Sequence record: NC_026927.1
DNA length: 64,000 nt
Strand: one strand, 5' to 3'
The position numbers and the translations under genes are program-made. This document shows positions 35,896 through 56,481 of the stretch, piece after piece (the first letter of the stretch is position 1; every line of letters begins with the position of its first letter). The notes below the pieces were generated by a model. It ran no database searches, was not told the origin of the DNA, and saw only the letters and a list, made by a program, of their open reading frames with translations.

Positions 35896-36300
35896 ATGAA
35901 CAAGAACAAGCACAATGAGACTGTAGGATCTACAGTAGAAAGATCAGACGAGAGGATCAAAGACACTGGGGAGGTATTCACTCCCCTAGAACTGTGTCGT
36001 GAGATGGTGAACGAGATCCCTGAATCTACCCTACAAGATCCCAACTCCACCTTTTTAGATAATTCTGCTGGCTGTGGTAACTTCCTCATCGCCCTCAGGG
36101 ACCGGCTATTGGAATATCATGAGTTATCACATATCGTAGACAATATGATCTACTGTGTGGAACTTATGGAGGATAATCATAGGGAAATCTGTAAGACAAT
36201 GGGGGTATCTACCGATCATCCACACTATGTAAGGGCAAATGCACTGGAATACGATTATAGCTTCGGCAACCCCGTTGGGTTGGAAGGTTTCTTCGTGTGA
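35896..36300 (+). CDS. SAM-binding half of an N6-adenine DNA methyltransferase (134 aa)
   Basis: TGEVFTP (motif X), FLDNSAGCGNFL (motif I), YCVELMED; no NPPY. Confidence 0.8.
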   Translation: MNKNKHNETVGSTVERSDERIKDTGEVFTPLELCREMVNEIPESTLQDPNSTFLDNSAGCGNFLIALRDRLLEYHELSHIVDNMIYCVELMEDNHREICKTMGVSTDHPHYVRANALEYDYSFGNPVGLEGFFV

Positions 36301-36379
36301 CACCTGAATAACTGGCACAAGGGGGGTAGACGCCCCCCTGTTTTTGTGCCATAATATATCCATACCTAAGAAACCACCC
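36296..36379 (+). promoter_or_regulatory. Cassette copy 6
   Basis: TGTGACACC-TGAATA-ACTGGCACA; TAGACG..CATAAT. Confidence 0.85.
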
Positions 36380-36982
36380 ATGAGACTCACTCATAAATTT
36401 ACCAGAAGAGCCACAGATGAGGAGAAACTAGCCATTGCATCTGCTGGTTCTCTGTCTGCAATGGTTAAAGTTATTGCTATACTATCGGAGAAGAAAGATC
36501 CCAACAGATATAAACCGGACAATTTTAAGGGTGATGCCTTTGAGTGGTTTGCTGAGTTCTTCTTCAAGACATTTGGTAATGATAATTTCTTCTTAAATGT
36601 GAATGGATATCAACCCATCAAAGGTGCAGATTATGGTGTTGATGGATTTGGCAAGTACTCTAAGGACACTACTAAAACAGTAGCTGTTCAGATTAAATAC
36701 AAATCAAATCTCACTAAGGTATTGTCTTCCGCCGAGGATAATCTTTCCAACTTTGGACTCCACGCTAATGCTAAGTATGGGGTAGAGATTGATGATAAGT
36801 ATTTGATTGTATTCACTTCGGGTAAGGGTATTGCACAAACTACCCAGAAAGGCATCTTTAATGATAAAGTGACTTGTATCAATGGTGAAATTATCAAACG
36901 ATATATTGACACCAATGAATCATTTTGGGAGGAGTTTCAGAAGAGGGCTGTGACAGTTAAGAAAGTGGCACAAGGGGTCTAG
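36380..36982 (+). CDS. PD-(D/E)xK (Mrr-like) restriction endonuclease domain protein
   Basis: GDAFEWFAE, ADYGVDG, VAVQIKY; start refined to cassette ATG. Confidence 0.65.
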   Translation: MRLTHKFTRRATDEEKLAIASAGSLSAMVKVIAILSEKKDPNRYKPDNFKGDAFEWFAEFFFKTFGNDNFFLNVNGYQPIKGADYGVDGFGKYSKDTTKTVAVQIKYKSNLTKVLSSAEDNLSNFGLHANAKYGVEIDDKYLIVFTSGKGIAQTTQKGIFNDKVTCINGEIIKRYIDTNESFWEEFQKRAVTVKKVAQGV

Positions 36983-37030
36983 GCACAACCCCCTCTATAC
37001 CCTATACTATATTCATACCAAAGGAACCCA
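36949..37030 (+). promoter_or_regulatory. Cassette copy 7
   Basis: TGTGACAGT-TAAGAA-AGTGGCACA. Confidence 0.9.
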
Positions 37031-38212
37031 ATGAACCAAAAACTCATCGATCTCACTAATGTTATTCGAGAGAAGTTCAAAGGCGAAAGGCATCGCCCAG
37101 TATCCGAAGATCTCGCAATTCAGATGACAGAGAACATCAACCCTGATGCAATTGTTGGGTTATTTGATGCTGGTTGTGTTATTGCTATTACTCTGATTGC
37201 TAGAGGACATGATCCCGCTAAGATTCATGTGATAGAGAAGTCGCAAGATAAATGTTATAATGAGTTCAGTAAGTCCATGGCAAAGAAGATGGGGTTCAAT
37301 CAAATTGTACCCCCTATGGGTAACCTCAACAGGATTGATATGAAGTTTGATGTAGTTATCGGCAATCCACCCTATCAGCGCGATACTAAAGGTGATCGCG
37401 GTGGCTCCTCCAGCAATCCTCTCTGGTGGGAATTCTCTAACATCGCATTCAATCTTGTTAAGGAAGGTGGTGTTGTTTCTCTCATTACCCCCGACAATAT
37501 TATGAGTGGTGGAGAGCAATTCACTTCCTTACTTATTGGAAACAAAGCAAAGTATGATCTCAAATTGATTGACTTCTCCGCAGATGATCATTTTTCTGTG
37601 GGAATCAAAGTTTGTCGTTGGGTTGCAATAAAGGGCAATCCAACTGGCGAAGCAACTAATAATGGCATTACATTCGATCCAACTAAAGTTGGTGTTGTTT
37701 TTAGTTCCCCCGAATTAAACTCAATCATCACCACTATGTGTGGTTATGAGTCCGATAAGTTAAACTTCAACACTTCCAATCGTTGGGATAAGGCTCCTAT
37801 CACTAACAAAGTTAAGAAACAAGGTAACGATATTGCTCTTGCTGATCTTAAGAATGATTCCTCGGAGTTGTACCCCCACGCTGTTATGAATAACGATAAG
37901 ATTAAGTATTCACATTTTGCATCCAAAGATGTTGGGGTTTGGCGTGTGTTTGTTCCCCAGTTCTCAACAAAGACCAAGTTCTTTGTTGATGATACTATGG
38001 CAGCAACTGCCTCAACATGGACTCATCGATGCAATAGCAAAGAGGAAGCCGAGAAGATCAAAGATATTGTTAGTGATTCTCGTTATGTTTGGATTATTGA
38101 TCAACTGAAAGTTAGCAAGCGTATCTCCTCTTCCATACGTTATCTTCCAATTGTTCCCATTGAAGAAGTCTTGGATGGGGATCAACTAGAGTACATTCAA
38201 TCTCAACTTTGA
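37031..38212 (+). CDS. Eco57I-like amino-methyltransferase with target-recognition region
   Basis: KFDVVIGNPPYQ (motif IV), LWWEF, GVVSLITP; degenerate motif I (GLFDAGC). Confidence 0.8.
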   Translation: MNQKLIDLTNVIREKFKGERHRPVSEDLAIQMTENINPDAIVGLFDAGCVIAITLIARGHDPAKIHVIEKSQDKCYNEFSKSMAKKMGFNQIVPPMGNLNRIDMKFDVVIGNPPYQRDTKGDRGGSSSNPLWWEFSNIAFNLVKEGGVVSLITPDNIMSGGEQFTSLLIGNKAKYDLKLIDFSADDHFSVGIKVCRWVAIKGNPTGEATNNGITFDPTKVGVVFSSPELNSIITTMCGYESDKLNFNTSNRWDKAPITNKVKKQGNDIALADLKNDSSELYPHAVMNNDKIKYSHFASKDVGVWRVFVPQFSTKTKFFVDDTMAATASTWTHRCNSKEEAEKIKDIVSDSRYVWIIDQLKVSKRISSSIRYLPIVPIEEVLDGDQLEYIQSQL

Positions 38213-38296
38213 TGTGACAGTTGGAGAAGTGGCACAAGGGGGCTAGGCAAGCCCCCTTTGTCGTGCTATACTATATTCATACCAAAGGAACCAACC
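38213..38296 (+). promoter_or_regulatory. Cassette copy 8
   Basis: TGTGACAGT-TGGAGA-AGTGGCACA; TAGGCA-17-TATACT. Confidence 0.9.
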
Positions 38297-38415
38297 ATGA
38301 TCAAACCATATCACCATCAGGAAGTGGCACAAGGGGGCTAGGCAAGCCCCCTTTGTCGTGCTATACTATATTCATACCAAAGGAACCAACCATGATCAAA
38401 CCATATCACCATCAG
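38226..38415 (+). repeat. Perfect 95-bp tandem duplication
   Basis: 38226-38320 identical to 38321-38415 (right arm, promoter, RBS, first 8 helicase codons). Confidence 0.95.
38321..38391 (+). promoter_or_regulatory. Cassette copy 9 (half site from duplication)
   Basis: Right arm AGTGGCACA only. Confidence 0.9.
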
Positions 38416-39843
38416 CAGAAAGCCCTAGACTCTATGGAGTCTGCCGATAAAGGCATGGTTGTTATACCCACTGGAGGTGGTAAGACTAATGTTATGGGTT
38501 GGGATATCCTCCGCAATCTTCCCACCTCTCAGGTGACTTTAGTTGTTACTCCTCGTATTCTCTTGACTGGACAACTCTCCAAAGAGATTGATTCTTTGAT
38601 TGGTGGATCTGCTACTTATATCCCTTTATTTGTTTATAGTGGTGAGGCTATCGAACGTGAGGAAGAATCCCTAGAATCTGAACAGATCTTAGATGTTTCG
38701 TTCTCTACTACCAGCCCATCAAAAGTAAGGTCTGAGTATGATCGTTCTGTTGAGACTGGTGAGTCTTTGATTATCTTCACCACTTATCATTCTCTCGATC
38801 GTGTTATATCATCCGATATTCCTGTAGATAGAGCATATCTAGATGAGGCACATAACGCTTGTGCTATCTCATTCTCATCAACAGTTGCTAAATTGAGTGA
38901 GGTTGTTGGATCTATGTTCTCATTCACAGCCACACCCAAACGCGGCGATTCCGCTGGTGGTAGGGGCAACAATAACATTGATGTATTTGGTGAGGTTATC
39001 TGTGATATTACAGCCGACGAGTTAGTTAAATCCGGTGTTATTGTTCCCCCTATGATATCCACATTGTATAGTGGCATTGAACGTGGAGATACCGAAGAAA
39101 CTAAACTTTCCAGAGATGTAATCAAACAAACAATCTTACACTATGAGGAAGTCCATGGTGATTGTAACCATAAAGTCTTAGTTGCAGCCGATGGAACTAA
39201 CACCATCTTCGAAATGACTACCCAGACCGATTTGATTTCCTGGTTGAATGATAGGGGCTACGATGTGTTCCATACCACCTCTAAGTATGGTGATTGGTAT
39301 AACGATCTTCGCATCAAAGATCGCAATGAGTTTCTAAGTTTATTGCAACAGGTTGGTTCCAACCCTAGTAAGAAGATGGTAGTTATTCATTACTCTATTC
39401 TCTCCGAGGGTATTGATATCCCTGGTCTGACTGGAGCACTTATTCTCCGCAATATGAATGACACTATTCTAACCCAGACAATTGGGCGTGTGTTGAGGAT
39501 GCTTCCCTCGGATCGTCGTGACATTCTAGAGGGTAGTATTGGAGCTGGTGATATCTCCAACTACCGGAAAGGGTATGGTATCGTTACCGTACCCATTCAC
39601 AAAGATGATGGAGATGACACTTTGGATAAAGTAATTCAACTGTACCAAGCTTGCTTTGTTATGGGTATGACTCATGAATATATTCTCAATGTAGAGAATG
39701 TTCGAGGAAGTGATTATCTTGAACTCCCAGAAGAGATTGAGGATAAACTTCGTCAGAAAATCACAGAGATTGAGGCACAATGGGAATGGGTTTATCGTAA
39801 GGACGAACTTACCGCTCTGTTTCCAGAGTTGGATCTACTTTGA
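38392..39843 (+). CDS. SF2 DEAH helicase (restriction-enzyme Res-like)
   Basis: PTGGGKT, DEAHN, FTATP, SILSEGIDIP, QTIGRVLR; start refined from 38221. Confidence 0.88.
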   Translation: MIKPYHHQQKALDSMESADKGMVVIPTGGGKTNVMGWDILRNLPTSQVTLVVTPRILLTGQLSKEIDSLIGGSATYIPLFVYSGEAIEREEESLESEQILDVSFSTTSPSKVRSEYDRSVETGESLIIFTTYHSLDRVISSDIPVDRAYLDEAHNACAISFSSTVAKLSEVVGSMFSFTATPKRGDSAGGRGNNNIDVFGEVICDITADELVKSGVIVPPMISTLYSGIERGDTEETKLSRDVIKQTILHYEEVHGDCNHKVLVAADGTNTIFEMTTQTDLISWLNDRGYDVFHTTSKYGDWYNDLRIKDRNEFLSLLQQVGSNPSKKMVVIHYSILSEGIDIPGLTGALILRNMNDTILTQTIGRVLRMLPSDRRDILEGSIGAGDISNYRKGYGIVTVPIHKDDGDDTLDKVIQLYQACFVMGMTHEYILNVENVRGSDYLELPEEIEDKLRQKITEIEAQWEWVYRKDELTALFPELDLL

Positions 39844-39920
39844 CACTTGAATAACTGGCACAGGGGGGCTAGGCACAGCCCCCTATACCTGCTATACTAA
39901 ACACATACCAAACCAATACT
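39839..39920 (+). promoter_or_regulatory. Cassette copy 10
   Basis: TTTGACACT-TGAATA-ACTGGCACA. Confidence 0.9.
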
Positions 39921-55227: not shown

Positions 55228-56481
55228 ATGACCCTCACTCTCCGCCCCCACCAACTAGAAGCACTTCAGGTGATGGCTGAGACTCGTCTTGGTCAGATAT
55301 TAGTTCCTACTGGTGGTGGTAAGACCCTTATCGCTATCATGGACGTTGTGAGGACTCTGGAGAACGCAGGAACCCCTCAGACCATCGTTGTGGTGGCACC
55401 TAGGATATTGTTAGCCCAGCAACTCTGTAGTGAGTATATGGAGGTTCTGAGTGATAGGTTCGCCAACGTTATCCCCGCCCATATCCATTCAGGTCATACA
55501 CCCCACTTCTCTACCACTAACATTCAGAAGATTCATCTCTTTGAGAAGATGATGGATACCGCCAACCTCCACCGCATATATTTCACCACATACAACTCAC
55601 TTCCACGTTTAGCAGAAGCAGGTGTGAGTGTCGATACTATTATGTTTGATGAGGCACATAACTCTACTCGTAATGACTTCTATCCCGCTACCAAGTATTT
55701 CTCACAGACCGCTAGTCGTTGTTACTACTTTACAGCAACTCCCCGTCACTCTGTAACATCCAAGAGACACGGAATGAACGAGTCTGATGTATATGGTCAG
55801 GTCATCTATAATGTTCCCGCTCCTACACTTGTACAGGGTGGGTTCATCATCCCCCCACAGGTTCGTGTTAAAGAGATGGAGTTTGTAGCTAAACATGAAC
55901 TCATCTCACAGCGTGATACAAACCACCTCATCTCCTGTATTGATGACAACCACACGAGCAAAGTTCTAGTTTGTGCTAAGTCAGTCAAACAGATCATGCG
56001 TATGTTTAGTGAGACCGATATCAGCCAACAACTTGATGATCGTGGTTTCTCCTATATGTACATCTCAGCTAAGACTGGTGGTGTTATCAATGGTAAGAAA
56101 GTATCACGTACTATGTTCTTCGATACTCTAAACGAGTGGGGTAAGGATAACAACAAGAAGTTCATTGTACTTCATCATTCTATTCTCTCTGAGGGTATCA
56201 ATGTAAGTGGTCTAGAGTCCGCTATCTTCTTACGTACTATGGATCATATCACTATCAGTCAAACGATTGGAAGAGTAATAAGATTACATAAGGATGATGC
56301 CCAAGGTATGAGAGATGGTTCGATTCGCCCTGGTGACTTATCATCCTATACTAAGTCCTTTGGTTTGTGTATTGTTCCAGTTTATTCGAAGACACAACAA
56401 ACAGTTGCCAAGTCTCTTCAGGCAGTTGTTAATACCGTCTTTGTGGAAGGTGAAGCAGCAACCACAGTTGTGAGGCGTTAG
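55228..56481 (+). CDS. SF2 DEAH helicase (Res-like), paralog of 38392
   Basis: PTGGGKT, FDEAHN, FTATP, SILSEGINV, QTIGRVIR. Confidence 0.9.
   Translation: MTLTLRPHQLEALQVMAETRLGQILVPTGGGKTLIAIMDVVRTLENAGTPQTIVVVAPRILLAQQLCSEYMEVLSDRFANVIPAHIHSGHTPHFSTTNIQKIHLFEKMMDTANLHRIYFTTYNSLPRLAEAGVSVDTIMFDEAHNSTRNDFYPATKYFSQTASRCYYFTATPRHSVTSKRHGMNESDVYGQVIYNVPAPTLVQGGFIIPPQVRVKEMEFVAKHELISQRDTNHLISCIDDNHTSKVLVCAKSVKQIMRMFSETDISQQLDDRGFSYMYISAKTGGVINGKKVSRTMFFDTLNEWGKDNNKKFIVLHHSILSEGINVSGLESAIFLRTMDHITISQTIGRVIRLHKDDAQGMRDGSIRPGDLSSYTKSFGLCIVPVYSKTQQTVAKSLQAVVNTVFVEGEAATTVVRR

Follow-up and report, generated by a model that had tools for sequence, protein, structure and literature searches.

The four consecutive genes gp051 to gp054 of Synechococcus phage ACG-2014f isolate Syn7803C90 (KJ019059 / NC_026927) appear, on balance, to encode a multi-subunit machine which resembles the Type ISP restriction-modification enzymes, with gp051 as the S-adenosylmethionine (AdoMet) subunit of a two-piece methyltransferase family. 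The phage is a T4-like cyanomyovirus (Kyanoviridae, Atlauavirus), and the stretch analysed, called the window here, comprises bases 1-64000 of its record. All four open reading frames are annotated GenBank genes of NC_026927 on the plus strand. An earlier note on this DNA had described them as a disassembled ISP-like system, and an open reading frame check together with the GenBank annotation confirmed the four reading frames and their motifs at the positions it had given. The genes are listed below.

gp051, 35896-36300, plus strand: putative AdoMet-binding half, encoded by itself, of an N6-adenine DNA methyltransferase, 134 amino acids (Pfam N6_Mtase, PHROG 4376)
gp052, 36380-36982, plus strand: predicted Mrr-family PD-(D/E)xK nuclease, 200 amino acids (motifs, AlphaFold/Foldseek)
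gp053, 37031-38212, plus strand: predicted gamma-class Eco57I-type N6-adenine methyltransferase with a C-terminal target-recognition domain, 393 amino acids (Pfam Eco57I)
gp054, 38392-39843, plus strand: superfamily 2 (SF2) DEAH helicase, 483 amino acids (Pfam ResIII, DEAD, Helicase_C)

The evidence which carries this reading is the linkage of the four genes, which was examined both ways, in loci selected by the nuclease family and in loci selected by the gp053 family. The nuclease family yielded 37 distinct loci, of which 34 contain the complete set side by side and two run into a contig end; the remaining nuclease clade, in the AT-rich loci L118-L120, is without a gp051-like gene in the available sequence. 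The synteny survey which the earlier note had asked for as a check hence finds the complete set in 34 of the 35 loci which could be scored, in five gene orders. Starting from gp053, a gp051-like gene was found directly downstream in 21 of 22 loci, including pairs which are 25-41% identical to the window proteins; the identity of the gp051-like gene went down to 32-41%. The five orders are given below, where H stands for the helicase, M for the methyltransferase, N for the nuclease, and g for the gp051-like gene.

HMNg: Bellamy type, 29 loci
NMHg: S-CAM7 0910SB42 type
NHMg: loci L115/L116 and L144, L115 with 27% GC
HNMg: locus L179
gNMH: the window

Two of the four-gene sets sit in 27%-GC contigs unrelated to cyanomyoviruses. 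As the four genes are kept together in five orders, and also outside the cyanophages, they would seem to form a functional unit rather than to share a recombination hot spot. Bellamy shows only one Eco57I-type NPPY gene, the gp053-type gene 86, which is therefore the only candidate partner for the gp051-like gene of that phage.

The small protein gp051 contains motifs X, I, II, and III of the methyltransferases and lacks NPPY. Pfam N6_Mtase matches its residues 19-95 (profile positions 20-90), and a sequence search of the PDB yielded a weak match to the N-terminus of CamA. In a PHROGs search gp051 and gp052 each span the full length of a PHROG family listed as of unknown function. The gp051 family comprises 2443 clusters at 90% identity, nearly all of 130-141 amino acids and 60-78% identical, and 1282 representatives at 50% identity. 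In a family alignment of 20 rows, taken from six phage genera and metagenomes, the residues E26, F28, and T29 of motif X, D55, G59, G61, and F63 of motif I, and the motif II acid E89 are invariant, and the motif III position is occupied by Asp in 11 and by Asn in 9 rows. Among the ACG-2014f isolates which carry it, gp051 is 97-100% identical. Scans of bacterial genomes found gp051-like genes only in two contigs of metagenome-assembled genomes. The proposal that gp051 is a decayed or system-specific fragment has to be abandoned, since its relatives are numerous, uniform in length, and invariant in their AdoMet motifs. The related proposal that its tail represents a decayed NPPY motif is doubtful: the position in question is Asn in 5 and Glu in 12 of the 20 rows, and in the fused gamma-order relative P0290 an intact motif IV stands separately after the segment equivalent to the gp051 tail; in favour of the proposal, hhalign places the gp051 tail on motif IV of gp053.

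The clearest partner of gp051 is gp191, an Eco57I-type NPPY protein of 301 amino acids encoded outside the window (genome 140238-141143), about 100 kb from gp051. Both gp191 and gene 036 of P-SSM2 (PSSM2_036, 193 amino acids) start at ...IGNPPY, that is at motif IV, and are called headless here. The motif sets of the two kinds of protein are complementary and do not overlap, with X, I, II, and III in gp051 and everything from motif IV on in gp191 and PSSM2_036. The latter is the type case of the headless gene which most of these phages have upstream of their gp051-like gene; it had been considered as a diverged homologue of the nuclease, with which BLASTP detected no similarity, and proved to be a headless NPPY half. 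In 34 of 50 scorable loci selected by gp051 the upstream gene has GNPPY no more than 27 codons after the preceding stop codon, and in these the headless reading frame runs 7-43 nt into the gp051-like gene. Across the 45 database records of ACG-2014f (41 isolates after removal of RefSeq copies) gp051 and gp191 are both present in the same 26 and both missing from the other 19, and all cyanophage records with an Eco57I-type NPPY gene also carry a gp051-like gene.

Single-chain relatives exist in both possible orders. P0285, P0376, and P0408 have the beta order, with an NPPY start and a gp051-like end, as does P0359; in P0290, which has the gamma order, the gp051-like half comes first and is followed by a short linker and then by motif IV. 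From this gamma-order fusion the split point can be placed between motifs III and IV. In amino-methyltransferases this boundary corresponds to the seam in the middle of the seven-stranded sheet, between strands beta1 and beta4 (PMC7544214). The gene fusions suggest that a gp051 half and a headless half form one enzyme, and with fair confidence gp051 can be taken as the subunit which binds AdoMet in a methyltransferase made of two pieces. Complementation by two simple halves fits gp191 and the P-SSM2-type pairs well. The earlier idea of complementary AdoMet-binding and catalytic halves fits gp051 with gp191, which lies outside the window; it is weakened for gp051 with gp053, the AlphaFold model of which already contains a full Rossmann fold. 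No description of a natural two-piece N6-adenine methyltransferase, or of the gp051 family, was found in the literature. The surroundings of gp191 (locus L092, NC_026927 134000-143000, outside the window) contain two D12-class adenine methyltransferases, gp188 and gp192, besides the headless protein, and this methyltransferase cluster adjoins an 892 amino acids protein annotated as a cytidylyltransferase.

The third protein of the set, gp053, matches Pfam Eco57I with an E-value of 4.8e-16 and has NPPY at residues 112-115. In its family of about 60 close clusters motif IV is invariant, and G-x-G is found at motif I in 0 of 22 alignment rows, the motif I aromatic residue being likewise missing from 22 of 22. 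When the gp053 family was aligned to the gp051 family with hhalign (E 5.8e-5, probability 66%) a gap of seven columns fell exactly on the motif I glycine loop. The complementarity of motifs in gp051 and gp053 which had been noticed before is thereby borne out at the profile level, the loop being gapped in gp053 and invariant in gp051; the description of gp053 as a protein with intact NPPY, a recognition domain, and a weak motif I was likewise correct, the weakness amounting to a deletion of the glycine loop. A sequence search of the PDB with gp053 gave chance matches only. The AlphaFold model (predicted local distance difference test score, pLDDT, 87.3) shows a complete Rossmann fold with strands beta1-beta7 and a second domain, and its top Foldseek matches were M.BseCI, CamA, M.TaqI, and BrxX. 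The acidic positions of motifs I and II, D46 and E69, as well as P23 are conserved in the N-terminal half of the family.

For gp052 the PD-(D/E)xK nuclease proposed earlier is upheld by family-invariant motifs and by fold matches. Its family consists of 62 clusters in which F54-E55, G86-V87-D88-G89, and Q104/K106 are invariant and position 84 is Asp or Glu in most rows. The Mrr signature of LlaGI has been dissected by mutagenesis (PMC2790908), and the gp052 motifs F54-E55, D84-x-G86-V87-D88, and Q104-x-K106 match it, hence the assignment to the Mrr type. With Pfam Mrr_cat (PF04471) gp052 itself stays below the threshold (E 0.12, 13 bits versus a cut-off of 21 bits); among 20 relatives Mrr_cat matches eight weakly (best E 0.024) and Mrr_cat_2 four (best E 0.0054). 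A sequence search of the PDB found nothing, and the family profile gave chance-level matches to an aminopeptidase. The AlphaFold model (pLDDT 89) matched PD-(D/E)xK nucleases only in Foldseek, among them MspJI, Card1, EcoO109I, EndoMS, Ecl18kI, and Can2, with marginal E-values of 1e-3 to 0.1. The Mrr-type nuclease is therefore a prediction from motifs and modelled fold. A pattern-based scan of 185,579 species genomes from bacteria and archaea found no relatives of the gp052 family.

The helicase gp054 has GGGKT and DEAH in its sequence and gave weak matches to XPB/Rad25 and T4 UvsW in a sequence search of the PDB. It is 33-40% identical over 87% of its length to the core UvsW-like helicase of more than 400 cyanophage records; the own core copy of ACG-2014f lies at 55228-56481 of the window. 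In a phylogenetic tree the cassette helicases form a clade of their own, next to that of the core UvsW-like helicases in cyanomyoviruses as its sister group, from which they also differ by a C-terminal extension of about 60 amino acids. Of the earlier description as a DEAH Res-like helicase the DEAH box and the Pfam ResIII/DEAD matches remain, whereas the nearest relatives are UvsW-like proteins of cyanophages and not Res subunits.

Within ACG-2014f the genes gp052-054 are found in 14 of the 45 records, with 98.9-100% identity, and gp051 in 26; the other 19 have neither gp051 nor the cassette, which rules out that gp051 is universal in this phage. Counted by isolate, 13 have the cassette, 11 have gp051 and gp191 only, and 17 have neither. 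The slot after gp051 varies among the 26 records: it holds the cassette in 14, is empty in 4, contains a pair of genes for 178 and 125 amino acids in 5, a 691 amino acids helicase-like protein together with a 337 amino acids NPPY protein in 2, and the 125 amino acids gene alone in 1. As different contents are found beside gp051, gp051 and the cassette segregate separately in the population. The 19 records without gp051 carry a 125 amino acids gene in its place (L121 1471-1848, KJ019085). A gene for 125 amino acids at the same position in L004 (5505-5882, PHROG 5752) and L122 (1483-1860) is probably the same gene, and one of the L004/L122 type stands beside gp051 in some other isolates.

The means by which the three genes move is visible at their borders. 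Between the genes a repeat of about 70 nt occurs, consisting of TGGCACARGGGG, a G5-loop-C5 stem-loop with TAGGCA in the loop, 17 nt, TATACT, and the start codon. Such composite promoter/stem-loop (PeSL) cassettes have been described as bringing about the shuffling of modules in T4-type phages (PMC2839356, PMC4122927). The repeat precedes gp052, gp053, and gp054, in the last case twice, and also stands 3' of gp054, in agreement with the earlier observation that three of the four genes have a promoter cassette of their own. The copies around the genes are given below.

PeSL copy 1, 36306-36379, plus strand: upstream of gp052; stem-loop 36320-36339, promoter-like sequence 36327-36355; left recombination boundary
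PeSL copy 2, 36960-37030, plus strand: upstream of gp053 and overlapping the end of gp052; core 36966, promoter-like sequence 36980-37008
PeSL copies 3a/3b, 38226-38415, plus strand: perfect 95-bp tandem duplication (2.0 copies); promoter-like sequences 38244-38272 and 38339-38367
PeSL copy 4, 39844-39920, plus strand: upstream of gp055; core 39856, promoter-like sequence 39870-39898; right recombination boundary

The 12-nt core of the repeat (TGGCACARGGGG) has 16 copies in the window (5610-58074), all on the plus strand, versus 0.33 expected, so that the early region is closely set with promoter/stem-loop cassettes. Folding energies of -16 to -21 kcal/mol show three of the four stem-loops to be good, and the copy after gp052 is weak. 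The 95-bp duplication includes the first 24 nt of the gp054 reading frame and yields two tandem promoters and a mini open reading frame of 14 codons; it is present in this isolate alone, the other cassette-bearing records being about 95 bp shorter there. A general promoter scan of the region found 13 sites where 13.0 were expected, which is not above chance, and weight is therefore placed on the repeated PeSL sites only. In isolate C7, where the slot is empty, the junction is a hybrid of which the 5' part corresponds to the PeSL after gp051 (copy 1) and the 3' part to the PeSL after gp054 (copy 4). The cassette has hence been gained or lost through recombination inside the PeSL repeats, and gp052-054 are an accessory, PeSL-bounded, mobile three-gene cassette. 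From the promoter type we infer early expression of the cassette genes.

A working mechanism can be proposed on this basis. The two-piece family, common in marine cyanomyoviruses, would combine a gp051-like piece with another piece which comprises motifs IV to VIII and the target-recognition part. In the window gp053 would recognise a DNA site and flip out the adenine, and methyl transfer by gp053 would use AdoMet held by gp051, or bound with its help, thereby marking the phage DNA. Unmodified sites would license ATP-dependent movement of gp054 along the DNA, and gp052 would cut, the likely targets being the host chromosome or co-infecting phages. Physical association of the four proteins, their methylation and restriction activities, and these targets are predictions of the scheme. 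More tentatively, and as a possibility to which we would give somewhat less than even weight, one highly conserved free-standing AdoMet subunit may be shared as a plug-in by many catalytic and recognition subunits which can replace one another, an ISP-like machine of motor and nuclease may have been assembled from phage parts including a UvsW paralogue, and a lytic phage may in this way tell its own DNA from that of the host or of rivals. It would belong to the same tentative picture that the catalytic subunits span headless forms, forms with a minimal N-terminal extension, and full-fold forms with a dead AdoMet loop.

Several observations weigh against the proposal that the four proteins form one ISP-like machine. 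As the Rossmann fold of the gp053 model has all seven strands and its N-terminal half is predicted with confidence, gp051 cannot simply add missing strands to it, and with D46 and E69 kept, gp053 might bind AdoMet by itself; the role of gp051 toward gp053 may then be one of regulation, or gp051 may serve headless partners only, and a supply of AdoMet from gp051 to gp053 would be a step beyond the constant association of their genes. In 12 records gp051 is kept in isolates without the cassette and is hence not dependent on it, and the co-occurrence of gp051 and gp191 in 26 versus 19 records may go back to as few as one or two events, the sample being structured by clades. L118-L120 have the nuclease, helicase, and methyltransferase, with no gp051-like gene in the about 1 kb available downstream. 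The closest relatives of gp054 are recombination-type UvsW-like helicases and not restriction motors. Searches with PADLOC and NCBIfam gave weak sub-threshold domain matches for methyltransferase II/IIG, MADS2, PbeA, DpdF, and Dnd restriction, and none above threshold for the BREX, DISARM, Dnd/Pbe, Dpd, Hachiman, and Type I-IV models. Of the disassembled ISP-like system as first proposed, the domain set, which equals that of Type ISP, and the linkage stand, while the accessory nature of gp052-054, the partnership of gp051 with gp191, the complete fold of gp053, and the UvsW-like relatives of gp054 call for its revision.

These observations leave room for other explanations. Adjacency might merely reflect a recombination hot spot near uvsW, with gp051 serving gp191 only and gp052-054 being self-sufficient, so that the genes would be neighbours and not partners and gp053 would bind AdoMet via a variant motif I. 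The complete fold of gp053 with its conserved D46, E69, and P23, the 12 records with gp051 and no cassette, the loci L118-L120, and the PeSL repeats, by which the site becomes a hot spot where five or more different contents alternate, would all be accounted for. A cyanophage hot spot cannot, however, be the cause in the 27%-GC contigs unrelated to cyanomyoviruses, nor does it sit easily with the cassette having a gp051-like neighbour in 34 of the 35 loci which could be scored, in five orders; Bellamy-type phages show no headless partner for their gp051-like gene, and the motif I glycine loop and aromatic residue are missing in 22 of 22 rows of the gp053 family. We regard this explanation as unlikely, though it retains appreciable weight. 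Less probable still is a role in self-protection or DNA transactions, in which the methyltransferase and the helicase would protect or process phage DNA and the nuclease would act in recombination or repair beside a UvsW-type helicase. DarB of phage P1 is a methyltransferase-helicase protein with a presumed role of this kind. The 33-40% identity of gp054 to core UvsW-like helicases is in line with such a role, as are the fusion of helicase and methyltransferase in MA01-type phages (1074 amino acids), a weak match of gp053 to phrog_1685 (2278 positions), a family which we take to be DarB-like, and one phAPEC8-type record in which a relative of the headless half is labelled 'DarB-like anti-restriction'. 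It is opposed by the Mrr signature of gp052, which is typical of restriction enzymes, with Foldseek matches among restriction, defence, and repair endonucleases, by the identity of the domain set with that of Type ISP, and by the position of the genes behind early-type promoters and not among virion genes.

Two further explanations concern gp051 alone. It could work by itself in binding or sequestering AdoMet, for instance as a decoy which counters defence, and be no methyltransferase subunit; its identity of 60-78% is very high compared with its variable neighbours, and the protein is small, stands alone, and has a basic N-terminus which is conserved. We consider this very improbable in view of the fused relatives, which link a gp051-like part to NPPY halves in both possible orders, of the overlap of gp051-like genes with headless NPPY genes, and of the strict co-occurrence of gp051 with Eco57I-type NPPY genes. 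That gp051 is the decaying pseudogene remnant of a methyltransferase, as its end where motif IV would start and the hhalign alignment of its tail to motif IV of gp053 might suggest, is scarcely credible and is already refuted by the conservation data: it has thousands of relatives of common length with invariant AdoMet motifs, and 97-100% conservation among the ACG-2014f isolates that have it.

Beside gp051-like genes other modules were met as well. One consists of a helicase-like protein of 691-704 amino acids and an NPPY protein of 337-348 amino acids, and another is an accessory pair of 319 and 448 amino acids without a Pfam or PHROG match, which stands beside an NPPY subunit and a gp051-like gene. 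They are found at the following places.

Helicase-like/NPPY module: L003 5881-8966 (KJ019146); L006 1171-4324 (S-CAM7 0910CC49); L008 528-3752 (MA01)
Pair of 319 and 448 amino acids: L011 820-3127 (S-CAM7 0809CC03); also L013, L014, L017, L135, L138, and L145

The helicase-like proteins of 691-704 amino acids have a common N-terminal domain of about 100 amino acids with no library match, and in MA01 the helicase-like and NPPY proteins are fused. The 337 amino acids NPPY protein of KJ019146 (L003 7953-8966) contains an internal duplication of the domain which follows NPPY. Three S-CAM7 isolates have three different modules at one locus. In the phage clade of L118 and L120 (20% GC) the nuclease, a 508 amino acids helicase, and a 288 amino acids methyltransferase, the motif I of which is degenerate as in gp053, extend over about 6 kb and are separated by extra open reading frames. 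A DUF6267 gene often adjoins the module, on either side (L005 5252-6163, and many loci).

If the proposed ISP-like reading is true, a very abundant family of marine phage 'hypothetical proteins' would provide the cofactor subunit to an adenine methyltransferase naturally made in two pieces, and a restriction-modification machine with the content of Type ISP would exist in separate subunits, on lytic phages rather than in bacteria. This would bear on the degradation of host DNA and the exclusion of competitors by cyanophages without modified bases of the T4 kind. The locus is in addition a clear natural case of promoter/stem-loop repeats which move a multi-gene module among near-identical genomes, and PeSL-driven movement of the cassette accounts for part of the variation from isolate to isolate in the well-sampled ACG-2014f population. 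No description of this four-gene module, or of Eco57I-type genes in cyanophages, was found in the literature.

The closest known kind is the Type ISP enzymes, the domains of which have been described (PMC4666363). LlaGI and LlaBIII likewise combine an Mrr-type nuclease, an SF2 helicase-like ATPase, and a gamma-type N6-adenine methyltransferase with a recognition domain. They do so in a single chain, in contrast to the four polypeptides found here, which are accordingly no member of Type ISP but a functional look-alike by domain content; AdoMet binding is here apparently outsourced to a small separate protein, phage UvsW-like proteins are the nearest to the helicase, no coupler domain of the Type ISP kind was identified, and the genes are encoded by a lytic phage. 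C5-cytosine methyltransferases which are each made from two separately encoded polypeptides are known in M.AquI and M.EcoHK31I (PMC3404938). These are split near motifs VIII-X, whereas the enzyme proposed here would be of the N6-adenine type and split between motifs III and IV, with a small subunit common to many catalytic and recognition subunits. The circularly permuted amino-methyltransferases of class beta differ as well, as gp053 is gamma-like in sequence and model (Eco57I family, M.TaqI, CamA, M.BseCI) and the permuted form appears here cut into two proteins. The PeSL cassettes share with those of T4-type phages the G-rich stem-loop and early promoter, the repetition between small genes in a hyperplastic region, and the occurrence at indel junctions (PMC2839356, PMC4122927); those were described for coliphage and vibriophage relatives of T4, while the repeats here are dense and demonstrably bound an indel. 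For the cyanophage S-PM2, PeSLs had been judged unlikely to explain the acquisition of open reading frames (PMC4503421). Lytic viruses with a methyltransferase and a nuclease are also known from the restriction-modification systems of chloroviruses and Marseilleviridae (PMC7248222, PMC7253447), which differ in being simple Type II pairs. In the Marseilleviridae the host DNA was not degraded (PMC7253447), so that the role of virus-encoded restriction-modification systems is not uniform.

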